A DNA stretch of 64,000 nucleotides from Macrostomum hystrix (taxonomy: Eukaryota; Animalia; Platyhelminthes), in assembly GCA_950097015.1 (NCBI GenBank), contig CATNEN010000029.1, forward strand, positions 806,001 through 870,000, given 5' to 3'. This document shows positions 24,801 through 27,252 of this stretch, piece by piece. The notes under the pieces were generated by a model that saw only the letters and a list, made by a program, of their open reading frames with translations, was not told the DNA's origin and searched no databases. How positions within the stretch are numbered: the stretch's first letter is position 1; each line of letters begins with the position of its first letter. Made by a program: the position numbers and the translations under genes.

Positions 24801-27252
24801 TTGCCAACTGGCTTTTTTGGCAAGCGAATATGTTGTGAACTTTTTTTACTTGGAAAAAAATTGCTTTTGCACTGGCATGCAGGCATCACTTTTGATTTTC
24901 TCTTCGTTTTTGTGTCACTCTGTTTTCTATTCGCTTAGAGCTACTGAGTTGATTTCATAATTAGAAAATGTTTAAATCATTCATAATCATCAAAAGTTAC
25001 TCGTACATTAAAGTAAATTTATATATTTATATTTAATTACGTTACGGACGTACTTAAGACATACCACGCTATCGTAATCCTATCTGGTGTGCCTAGTACA
25101 TTAAGTTGAGGGTTAGTGTGGACAGTTTTCGGTAATGCACGTCGCTGAGTCACGCTCTTCTCAAACCGCGCCACCCCAATCTTTAGCCCTTCGTCATCGC
25201 TGATTGGTTGTGAAGTGTATATATATATCCGTCGTTAGACGGGCTCTGGCTGCCCCCTGCTGATTGCAGAAAAAGTCTATCCCTTCCTCGTCGCTGATTG
25301 GCTCAATTCTATTTGTAGATGTATAGTTGACCCTCTGCGGGCTGTCCGTTGTTAATTAAGAAAAAATCTATCCCTTCCTCGTCGCTGATTGGCTCAATTC
25401 TATTTGTAGATGTATAGTTGACCCTCTGCGGGCTGTCCGTTGTTAATTAAGAAAAAATCTATCCCTTCCTCGTCGCTGATTGGCTCAATTCTATTTGTAG
25501 ATGTATAGTTGACCCTCTGCGGGCTGTCCGTTGTTAATAAAGAAAAAAATCTATCCCTTTCTCGTTGCTGAAAAAGTAGTCTATTTGCAAAATTAGCTAG
25601 TCATGTGCCGGCTGTCCTCTTTCAATAAAACACACTGTCTAGCCCTATGTGTGTTTGTTTCCGCGTCCTTGCGCGCGCTTTCAGAAAGACGATCGTGACG
25701 TTGACAACTTTGACAAGACCTTCACCAAAGCCGATGTCAATCTAACCCCGGTTGATCCGGCTGTCATTCACAATCTATCAACTGTCACCGGCTGCGACCC
25801 GTTTTACGATTTCGACCACCGCAACGACAGCTATGCTCCGCGCGCTTCTCATCTCTACCAGCTAATGAGCGCGCTGGACACCCGAGACAGCCAGGACTGA
25901 GGCTTCATTGTTCACTGACCATTGTTTCTAAGAATTCACCCTAAGATATGTTTATGCCCGTAGACTTTTCCCTTAACTTTCTGTCCGTTGAACAGTGTTT
26001 CCGTCGCGTTTATTCTAACTTTATTTAATACTCTGTTTGTGTTATTGACACGGCTCCGTTAATGCTTGTGATAATTTAGCTTTGTACTGCAGCAACTTGG
26101 TATCTGTTTGCTGATGTCAGCTTTTTATTTTATCAATATTTATTGTTCATTTGTTTTCCTTGTGTTTCGAAAATGTCGTGCTGCTAGTGAATCGCCATTC
26201 AAAAAGCTTCTAAATCAATCGATATTAATTTAAATAGGTGCATTTCGGTAAAACCTGAACCCGAATGTATCAATATCGATTTATCGATTTTTAGTAATTC
26301 GATTTAGTAAACATTTGTAATTTAGTTGGTTTTGTGAAAACGGAATGACTTAATCGATAATAAGAATAGATTTGAGGGGGTGAGTGGGTCAGCGGCTAAT
26401 GTCGCTGCCTCCCTTTCCAATGGTCGCTGGTTCGTTCCTCCCTCCAAGTCACGATTATTTCGGGGCTTAGTTGGAGGTTTGCCAAGTAGTGACTTGCGGA
26501 GATGCACCTTATTCTGTGCAACCAAGGCTAATTTAAAATAGCTTAACCCCTGCCTTCTGCATGCCTGCTTGTTTGTTTGTGCGTTGGGCCGGGTGTGAGG
26601 CGCTGTATGGGGGGTGGGGCGGGTGTGCACCAATGTGTACTCTCGTCCCTACCCTTCAGGCATCTAAGCCCTCTGGTTTGATCTGCTCTGTGCGTGTGCT
26701 GGCCTGGGGTGAGAGGCACTCCGGCTGCCGCCCCCTTCCCCGCTTGGCTTGCTGCTGTGTGTGAGGTGCCGGTGTCCAGGGGTCTAGATGGCGCGATGGG
26801 CCTAGTTCGCCGGCCTGGGAGCATGCCGTTCCTGTGTTTGTGCGTCAAGTCCCCAGGCCCCCTGCCAATAAGTAAATAAGAAGAGATTTGAATCATCTAT
26901 TAATTTTACAATTAAAAATCGATAAATCGATCGATGTCGCTATATAGCAATCAATAAATCGATAAGTCGCTTTGTAAGAGTCTATGAATCACTATGATAT
27001 TGATAAGAATGTCGAGTCCTACTTTATCCAGTATTTTAGCCAATAAAGTCCCTCAGTAAAATCGCATCCTGTCCCTATTCGCTCTGCCGCTTGTCTCAGA
27101 AATCAGCTCGCGATGTCAGCAATTTTGATCGGCAGTTCACAGACGAAGCCGCCCGCCTGACGCCAACTGACAAGCTGTTCATCATGAACCTAGACCAGAC
27201 TGAGTTCACCGGCTTTTCCTATGTCAACCCGGAGTTCATTGTGGACGTTTGA
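3896..27252 (+). CDS. PRKCB: Conventional (Ca2+/DAG-dependent) protein kinase C, alpha/beta-like; 658 aa with the distal terminal exon
   Basis: Exons 3896-4047, 4506-4537, 4607-4689, 5083-5191, 6395-6523, 11398-11551, 11983-12214, 14948-15082, 17020-17193, 17978-18069, 19866-19928, 20012-20150, 21633-21821, 23052-23192, 27100-27252. All junctions are GT..AG with matching phases; total 1977 nt. Motifs: pseudosubstrate [13 protein letters not shown]1A HKF..FCGHC, C1B FCDHC, C2 ([24 protein letters not shown]), [34 protein letters not shown], turn motif LTP, hydrophobic motif FTGFSY. The symbol marks the closest vertebrate class; one-to-one orthology is not implied. Confidence 0.95.
6748..7330. 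repeat. 22-bp minisatellite (AGGGAATTGGRTGCCGGATTTG), about 26 copies, PKC intron 5
   Basis: Read directly. Confidence 0.95.
8428..8985. repeat. 111-bp tandem repeat, about 5 copies, PKC intron 5
   Basis: 37-aa periodicity in ORF 8414-8935; units nearly identical. Confidence 0.95.
10060..11386. repeat. 48-bp double-palindrome satellite, about 27 copies, ending at the PKC exon 6 acceptor
   Basis: Unit GAGTCCACT-AGATACCGGTATCT-T-TAAATGCTCATTTA-GTTTAATTCT. Confidence 0.95.
11575..11910. repeat. Low-complexity (GTGACA/CTGTGT)-type repeat filling PKC intron 6
   Basis: Read directly. Confidence 0.85.
12269..12620. repeat. 18-bp minisatellite (GATCCCATTCGGAATCGT), about 19 copies, PKC intron 7
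   Basis: Read directly; internal palindrome ATTC-G-GAAT. Confidence 0.95.
15092..16978. repeat. 22-bp minisatellite (TGCTGCTGRACTGGGATTAGCA), about 85 copies, fills PKC intron 8
   Basis: Read directly; AGCATGCT palindrome across unit junctions. Confidence 0.95.
18090..19510. repeat. Compound 20-bp minisatellite (GTCTGAGTAGGTTGGAGCTG, then GTCTGAGTCGGTTGGAGCCG from about 19210), PKC intron 10
   Basis: Read directly. Confidence 0.95.
20151..21027. repeat. 22-bp G-rich minisatellite (GATGGTGGCGGGTGTAG-AGGGA/CGGCA), about 40 copies, starting at the PKC exon 12 donor
   Basis: Read directly. Confidence 0.95.
21830..22135. repeat. 15-bp hairpin minisatellite (GTCAGATCACATCTG), about 20 copies, PKC intron 13
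   Basis: CAGAT-CAC-ATCTG inverted repeat in each unit. Confidence 0.95.
22130..23035. repeat. 21-bp minisatellite (GTCAGGTCAGTWGTTGACTCA), about 43 copies, each with TGACTCA
   Basis: Read directly; ends about 16 bp before the exon 14 acceptor. Confidence 0.95.
23470..24475. repeat. 22-bp C-rich minisatellite (TCCCATCCCCTGATCTACCATC), about 45 copies, PKC intron 14
   Basis: Read directly. Confidence 0.95.
25268..25570. repeat. 91-bp tandem repeat, about 3.3 copies, containing GCTGATTGGCT
   Basis: ctatccctt recurs at 25277, 25368, 25459 and 25551. Confidence 0.9.
25685..25900 (+). CDS. PKC proximal alternative terminal exon (15a); gives a 679-aa isoform
   Basis: Pyrimidine-rich acceptor ...gcgcgctttcag|AAA in phase 0, matching the exon 14 donor. 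Encodes [71 protein letters not shown], a clear V5 homolog (NFD, LTP, FxxF). Confidence 0.8.
   Translation, partial: KDDRDVDNFDKTFTKADVNLTPVDPAVIHNLSTVTGCDPFYDFDHRNDSYAPRASHLYQLMSALDTRDSQD
26376..26874 (+). mobile_element. SINE family A, second copy, between PKC exons 15a and 15b
   Basis: Aligns by eye with 916-1555 at the head (ggtcagcggcta..gtcgctgcct..caagtcacgatt) and tail (gcgcgatggg..ctagttcgccgg..ccccctgc). TSD AATAAGAA(T/G)AGATTTGA at 26359-26375 and 26875-26891, one mismatch. Confidence 0.8.
27100..27252 (+). CDS. PKC distal terminal exon (15b), PKC-betaI-like V5
   Basis: Acceptor ttgtctcag|AAA. Encodes [50 protein letters not shown]; [14 protein letters not shown] matches the PKC-betaI tail as I recall it. 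Confidence 0.93.
   Translation, partial: KSARDVSNFDRQFTDEAARLTPTDKLFIMNLDQTEFTGFSYVNPEFIVDV

Follow-up and report, generated by a model that had tools for sequence, protein, structure and literature searches.

Textbooks describe protein kinase C (PKC) betaI and betaII, the two products of PRKCB, as a vertebrate splice pair. The subject here is a gene of the flatworm Macrostomum hystrix, a conventional PKC (cPKC) lying in a 64,000-nucleotide stretch of contig CATNEN010000029.1 (GenBank assembly GCA_950097015.1, forward-strand positions 806,001 to 870,000; hereafter the window), which ends in two alternative C-terminal (V5) coding exons, a proximal exon A and a distal exon B. From the letters of the window alone it had been proposed (the original prediction) that a betaI/betaII-type switch is either far older than vertebrates or arose convergently by exon duplication. 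The old age of the switch is already on record, though only as a table entry: a survey of tandem duplicated exon substitution events dates the PRKCB event to at least Bilateria (Martinez-Gomez et al., 2022, Table S2; PMC9741552), and names pkc-2 and Pkc53E as PRKCB-family members annotated with such events (PMC9741552). The Drosophila gene Pkc53E belongs to the same gene family and has a tandem exon substitution listed, but under the heading 'different region, convergent' (Table S5; PMC9741552), and it is at the N-terminus that its described isoforms differ (bioRxiv 10.1101/2021.09.29.462380). A literature search of partial coverage returned no description of the flatworm, annelid or shrimp loci discussed below, nor of a variant with an acidic hydrophobic motif. 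We consider it likely that this Macrostomum-like flatworm cPKC, with its two alternative terminal coding exons, carries a copy of an old tandem pair, termed here T2 (proximal) and T1 (distal, betaI type).

The gene occupies about 3896 (pseudosubstrate and C1A) to 27252 on the + strand, as judged from tblastn and from the translations of open reading frames (ORFs) (Table 1). Its pseudosubstrate, tandem C1, C2, AGC kinase domain and Pkinase_C tail point to membership of the conventional (alpha/beta/gamma) class, and the proteins nearest to it carry the names calcium-dependent or classical PKC. The splice layout agrees with what had been read from the letters: exon 14, the last common coding exon, ends ...FKPRI at a phase-0 donor (23192/23193, with gtgagt from 23193), and the two downstream acceptors, ...gcgctttcag before exon A and ...cttgtctcag before exon B, are both in phase 0 with it. 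Each exon encodes a homologous tail matching Pfam Pkinase_C (PF00433; E 8.6e-07 for exon A and 2.9e-14 for exon B) and closes with its own stop (25898-25900 and 27250-27252, respectively). This layout, in which a single phase-0 donor is followed by two homologous last coding exons that each carry a stop, is the PRKCB type. The G+C content of exon A (0.53) and exon B (0.51) stands against 0.33-0.38 in the flanking intron. Because the two exons have only about 37% of their residues in common and almost no DNA similarity, the duplication that separates them must be old rather than recent.

Table 1. Positions of the cPKC gene parts in the window, and of tandem terminal exons at loci of three other animals.
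Sequence	Feature	Positions	Strand	Evidence or remark
Window	Upstream cPKC body, whole	3896-23192	+	tblastn and ORF translations
Window	Pseudosubstrate and C1A	~3908-4045	+	tblastn of cPKC proteins P0066, P0019, P0025
Window	Other C1 parts	4606-4689, 5086-5190, 6388-6528	+	tblastn, cPKC proteins
Window	C2	11397-12214	+	tblastn, cPKC proteins
Window	Kinase domain exons	15002-23192	+	tblastn, cPKC proteins
Window	Last common coding exon (exon 14), ends ...QPPFKPRI	23046-23192	+	Sequence; final 30 nt are the loose end of RNA contigs beginning at 27100
Window	Exon A, proximal alternative V5 exon, putative T2 type, 71 codons and TGA	25685-25900	+	Pkinase_C, RNA contigs, relatives P0001/P0003/P0007, T2 profile
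Window	3' untranslated region (UTR) after exon A, minimum extent	25901-26040	+	Unbroken contig to 26040; zero depth 26090-26295
Window	Repeat in the A-B intron resembling a short interspersed nuclear element (SINE), outside the mechanism	26376-26860	.	Many deep mismatched contigs, unrelated loose ends
Window	Exon B, distal alternative V5 exon, T1 (betaI) type, 50 codons and TGA	27100-27252	+	Pkinase_C, RNA junction, tree, T1 profile
Window	3' UTR of the B isoform, likely poly(A) signal ATTAAA at 27722	27253-27745	+	Contigs 27100-27474 and 27506-27744; hexamer scan
Lamellibrachia satsuma (annelid), L004	T2 proximal exon	35644-35823		Penultimate exon ends ...QPPYKPKI
Lamellibrachia satsuma (annelid), L004	T1 distal exon	41636-41788		
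Mesorhabditis belari (nematode), L002	T2 proximal exon	5711-5905		Penultimate exon ends ...QPPYKPKV
Mesorhabditis belari (nematode), L002	T1 distal exon	11007-11159		
Penaeus vannamei (shrimp), L006	T2 proximal exon	from 29235		Penultimate exon ends ...QPPFKPKI
Penaeus vannamei (shrimp), L006	T1 distal exon	37303-37455		

The two tail types recur widely among animals. A region search with P0001, a PKC of Macrostomum lignano, returned 613 cPKC fragments, whose tails fall into two plain classes. T1 tails, of betaI type, follow the pattern [KR]..[KR]DVSNFD..FT.E... to [YF].NPE[FY]...V-stop and are found in insects, crustaceans, molluscs, a brachiopod, an annelid, Clonorchis, M. lignano and vertebrate betaI. 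T2 tails follow the pattern.[DN]PR.[AG]ENFD..F[TR]..P..LTP.D..V[IL]...F..F[ST][FY].NP.[FY].... and are found in Patella, horseshoe crabs, a tick, crabs, isopods, an ostracod and many transcript-like contigs, where they stand behind kinase domains on intron-free sequences of 1-3 kb (P0008-P0013); no T2 tail occurs among the insect hits of this search. Both types lie in tandem at genomic loci of the annelid Lamellibrachia, the nematode Mesorhabditis and the shrimp Penaeus (Table 1), where intron position, phase and T2-then-T1 order are the same as in the window, each exon has its own stop, and each acceptor falls exactly seven codons before NFD, a distance that both exons of the window share. 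The pair is probably not a local duplication, being common to annelids, nematodes and crustaceans, and probably has its counterpart in the betaII/betaI pair of vertebrate PRKCB. Of the two options in the original prediction, an age greater than that of vertebrates is favoured over convergence, at any rate as regards the pair of exons.

The closest described system is vertebrate PRKCB itself, which like the window is one cPKC gene with two homologous last coding exons after an exon ending ...QPP[FY]KPK, the betaI type being distal. Compared with PRKCB, the proximal exon of the window is far more diverged, carries Asp, not Ser, in the hydrophobic motif and encodes a longer tail. Among nematodes, C. 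elegans pkc-2 is listed with the PRKCB-family event (PMC9741552), and the rhabditid Mesorhabditis belari has a T2/T1 pair like that of the window; its T2 exon keeps a phosphorylatable FGEFSF, unlike FYDFDH in exon A.

Class assignment draws on a maximum-likelihood tree of 58 V5 tails over 52 columns, unrooted and with no tails of novel or atypical PKCs (nPKC, aPKC), and on T1 and T2 profiles built from invertebrate tails with the macrostomid and vertebrate rows left out. All T1 tails lie on one side of a branch supported at 98/97, a group that holds exon B, the B tail of M. lignano, vertebrate betaI and the distal exons of the annelid, the nematode and the shrimp. The V5 phylogeny thereby bears out the betaI-like character predicted for the distal exon, which is 66-68% identical to vertebrate betaI tails versus 46-48% to betaII and alpha. 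B tails and betaI prefer the T1 over the T2 profile by 33-52 bits (50-52 for B-type tails, 52 for the window). On tail sequence, exon B is the orthologue of the betaI exon. Exon A and its three known relatives, described below, form a clade (97/95) opposite T1, among the T2 tails, and prefer the T2 profile by 14 bits (window) and 24-32 bits (relatives); a tree constrained to unite the A-type tails with macrostomid B tails is worse by 23 log-likelihood units. The A tails of M. lignano and of a second genomic contig (L001) also carry the T2 signature DPR.AENFDK.FT.A.VKLT..D.AV[IL]. As far as these comparisons indicate, exon A belongs to the proximal (T2) exon of protostomes, as its flatworm copy.

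The relationship of T2 to vertebrate betaII is less direct. In the tree the betaII and alpha tails stand outside T1 and adjoin it at 95/72, a placement that comes with a long-branch warning. Neither profile is clearly preferred by the betaII and alpha tails (differences of about -1 to +8 bits), so that one-to-one orthology of A and betaII is at most probable. Position, the AENFD signature and the single split of the tree favour orthology of the proximal T2 exon with betaII, which we regard as probable, the sequence itself not being decisive.

Tail A keeps NFD, the F-x3-F-T (TOR interaction) motif and the turn-motif Thr-Pro (LTP), and departs from a canonical tail further on. Its hydrophobic motif reads FYDFDH, with Asp at the usual phospho-Ser position and no Ser or Thr, and is followed by an extension with a conserved N-x-x-[FY]-A-P-x-x-S-x-L. 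Of the three priming elements of an AGC kinase C-tail (NFD, the turn-motif Thr-Pro and a hydrophobic motif F-x-x-F-[S/T]-[F/Y] with a phosphorylatable residue), exon B has all three and exon A only the first two. A word-based protein search with exon A alone, in a collection without the short ORF fragments of this genome, gave no match, and an exhaustive search of representative proteins gave two true relatives (P0001 and P0003); PKCs of full length that bear A or T2 tails are probably masked by T1-tailed representatives of their 50%-identity clusters, and this search is uninformative on other phyla. The first relative, P0001 (UniRef A0A1I8GZD6, 'protein kinase C'; phmmer E 2.4e-16, about 64% identity over exon A), is a gene model that joins ...REIQPPYTPKI directly to KDPRDVENFDKIFTKAPVKLTPVDMAVIHNL...DPFEGFEH..., so that its A tail opens KDPRDVENFDK and has FEGFEH as hydrophobic motif. 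P0003, on the Logan contig L001, is a genomic A-type exon behind ...ctttcacag with the motif FAEFDF, and a profile of these three tails found a fourth, P0007, with FVEFDF.

The A-type tails of the M. lignano PKC model and of two other assemblies are 52-66% identical to exon A, and 28 positions are invariant among the A-type tails of the three species aligned. Asp or Glu occupies the hydrophobic-motif Ser/Thr position in all four A-type tails, all of which share the N-x-x-[FY]-A-P-x-x-S-x-L element; an acidic residue occurs there in none of the 23 T1 rows aligned for the tree. A second M. lignano protein, P0119, has a B-type tail and matches the window gene at 90-96% identity. Against the paralogue P0001 the identity of the window gene is about 70% in the kinase exon next to exon A and 64% in exon A itself, so that exon A has not outpaced that kinase exon in divergence, as would be expected under purifying selection; between the A tails of the window and L001 protein identity is about 53% and synonymous sites are saturated. 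A dead duplicate, the outcome that the original prediction had tied to a lack of reads to 25685 together with a lack of conserved orthologues or purifying selection, is contradicted by these relatives, and exon A is not one.

Acidic hydrophobic motifs also occur in T2 tails outside macrostomids. Three transcript-like contigs from the JGI (P0013, P0059 and P0090) carry FGDFDY, FQDFDW and FSGFEF, and P0059 has NPDFSPIVS, which resembles the A-type extension.

A search for sequencing runs returned four runs of one study and a weak one of another organism. Transcription of both exons is visible in Logan contigs from three of those four runs, whose kind is not on record, placed on 25575-28650; this stretch leaves out exon 14, a 1-kb repeat of 22-bp units (23479-24474) and a repeat of 91-bp units (25268-25571). 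In all three runs contigs begin exactly at 27100, and their unmatched part, GACATCCAGCCGCCTTTCAAGCCTCGAATC, corresponds to the final 30 bases of exon 14. Since these contigs join 23192 to 27100, the runs are of RNA. The two splice junctions expected from the original prediction fared differently: that from 23192 to 27100 is present at a depth of 23-29, while for the one from 23192 to 25685 only transcription of exon A itself was seen. Exon A is covered by contigs 25715-26040, 25690-25982 and 25700-25871 (depth 3.3-5.6, no mismatches), which begin 5-30 nt from its acceptor, and the unique intron beside it (25575-25677 and 26090-26295) has zero cover in the same runs. Exon A is transcribed with exon-like limits. 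Cover of the B 3' UTR runs to about 27745, near the hexamer at 27722, with none after that until 28195.

These data fit a mechanism in which the choice between the acceptors at 25685 and 27100 would yield two enzymes. Splicing of 23192 to 27100 would give the main isoform, with the canonical betaI-like tail B and its phosphorylatable FTGFSY, and splicing of 23192 to 25685 a minor isoform with tail A, on a transcript that most likely has a 3' end of its own shortly past 26040. In vertebrate cPKCs the hydrophobic motif is autophosphorylated after steps that involve mTORC2 and PDK1, and down-regulation of these kinases starts when PHLPP removes that phosphate (PMC8536831). The A isoform would instead hold a fixed negative charge at this motif and need no autophosphorylation there; dephosphorylation of the PHLPP type could neither inactivate it nor target it for degradation, and the conserved extension of tail A may serve as a docking site. 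The splice choice would then decide whether the enzyme is under normal regulation or is more stable and scaffolded in another way.

Related kinases offer a parallel: aPKC and PKN/PRK carry Glu or Asp at the hydrophobic-motif position. Exon A, its M. lignano counterpart and the two other A tails resemble those C-tails in this acidic residue, and differ from them in that the acidic motif is on a conventional PKC, would be chosen by splicing rather than fixed in the gene, and belongs to a tail that is otherwise of the cPKC T2 class by profile. We tentatively hypothesize, with somewhat less than even confidence, that the macrostomid proximal V5 exon has been remodelled to a built-in negative charge and the N-x-x-[FY]-A-P-x-x-S-x-L element, that at least three transcript sources (those with FGDFDY, FQDFDW and FSGFEF) may have made the acidic change independently, and that splicing toggles between a form dependent on phosphorylation and PHLPP and a form that escapes them. 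If so, the acidic A tail would be the natural counterpart, selected by splicing, of the hydrophobic-motif mutants (Ser to Glu/Asp) made in the laboratory.

Several observations weigh against the reading of exon A as a functional copy of the old proximal exon. All RNA support comes from three runs of a single study, and in these no contig spans 23192 to 25685 and none crosses the acceptor of A. The missing junction, and a depth on A several-fold below that on B (contig depth being a poor gauge of isoform usage), could be taken to mean that exon A is a decaying pseudo-exon, transcribed only as intron or noise and giving no protein. We find this hardly credible in view of a 71-codon open frame with all core tail motifs and an exon-like G+C content, the conservation among relatives described above, the use of an A-type exon as tail in the M. 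lignano model, and cover that starts so near the acceptor with none on the unique intron to either side. A hexamer scan also found no AATAAA or ATTAAA within 400 nt after exon A, and a cassette mode would also be compatible: exon A would be internal between exon 14 and exon B and have no poly(A) site of its own, its stop ending the protein and exon B becoming 3' UTR. The mammalian PRKCB betaII exon is used as an internal cassette in this way. Cover after A fades at about 26040-26089, and a donor-like GGTAT lies at 26099, with others further on. As against PRKCB, no messenger RNA with A plus B is seen in the contigs of the window species; no joint from exon A to 27100 is among the loose ends listed, where all three runs have only the end of exon 14 at 27100, although contigs drop low-depth variants, which limits the weight of the missing joint. 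We judge cassette use unlikely, and it would lead to the same A-tail isoform, the difference lying in the RNA mechanism only.

Other points against the favoured reading concern descent. Clonorchis sinensis (L003) has only T1, with no T2 exon detected in its last intron (81337-84335), so the pair is not universal in flatworms. In pairwise comparison exon A of the window, itself strongly diverged, shows similar identities to T1 and to T2 tails, and its class depends largely on the profiles and on relatives that have changed less. These similar identities would also suit a duplication of a betaI-like exon specific to macrostomorphans, whose likeness to the proximal exons of other phyla would be convergent; the approximately unbiased (AU) test, run on 52 columns, is only borderline against a clade of A and macrostomid B tails and does not quite reject it (p 0.051), and frequent convergence of such events is stressed by Martinez-Gomez et al. 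(PMC9741552). Such a duplication is nevertheless quite improbable in our view, given the poorer likelihood of the constrained tree, the preference of all four A-type tails for the T2 profile, the T2 signature in the A tails of M. lignano and L001, and an exon order and intron position that are the same in four phyla. Descent of exon A from the old proximal exon remains the reading we prefer, with the further qualification that the effect ascribed to Asp or Glu at the hydrophobic motif is argued by analogy.

Single-tail loci are not confined to Clonorchis. Armadillidium (L005) and Rhipicephalus (L007) have T2 only, with no T1 exon within 10 kb downstream of it, and the three loci may reflect loss, long introns or separate genes; in the case of Clonorchis, parasitic flatworms may have lost the proximal exon, or it may sit in the other cPKC paralogue.

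The window locus adds to a known, old type of splicing, and its acidic-motif variant is lineage-specific. Together with the annelid, nematode and shrimp loci, it shows that a two-tail cPKC with a betaI-type exon distal and a second exon proximal goes back to the protostome ancestor at least, and probably to the bilaterian ancestor, as the 2022 survey lists (PMC9741552). The role of the two tails could now be addressed in tractable invertebrates, among them Macrostomum with its RNA interference and transgenesis, and the acidic hydrophobic motif of the flatworm would offer a natural test of how motif charge contributes to cPKC stability.

The pair also matters for annotation, since several public gene models choose one tail or fuse exon fragments. 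Two models, P0016 of Mesorhabditis belari (at L002) and P0023 of the fish Ilyodon furcidens, fuse a proximal V5 fragment to the distal exon: in P0016, ...PVKLTPPDMA is followed directly by KAPDDVSNFD..., and in P0023, ...FFTRHPPQLTLPDQQ by KSCRDVGNFD.... The fish model, with a betaII fragment and then the betaI exon, gives the PRKCB order. Both fusions are annotation artefacts from alternative terminal exons.

The surroundings of the gene are rich in repeats. Minisatellites with units of 21, 22, 91 and 20 bp fill introns and flanks at 22130-23037, 23479-24474, 25268-25571 and 28654-29113, respectively, the first of them adjoining the acceptor of the penultimate exon. The SINE-like repeat in the A-B intron resembles a stretch at about 995-1550 of the window in its ORF translations, and the RNA contigs placed on it come from other loci, with depth up to about 150, mismatches and unrelated flanks. 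Downstream of the gene, a transcribed stretch at 28195-28650 and beyond (depth 16-27, no mismatches) begins about 450 nt past the apparent end of the B 3' UTR, and is either a separate downstream transcript or part of a longer UTR form of the PKC.

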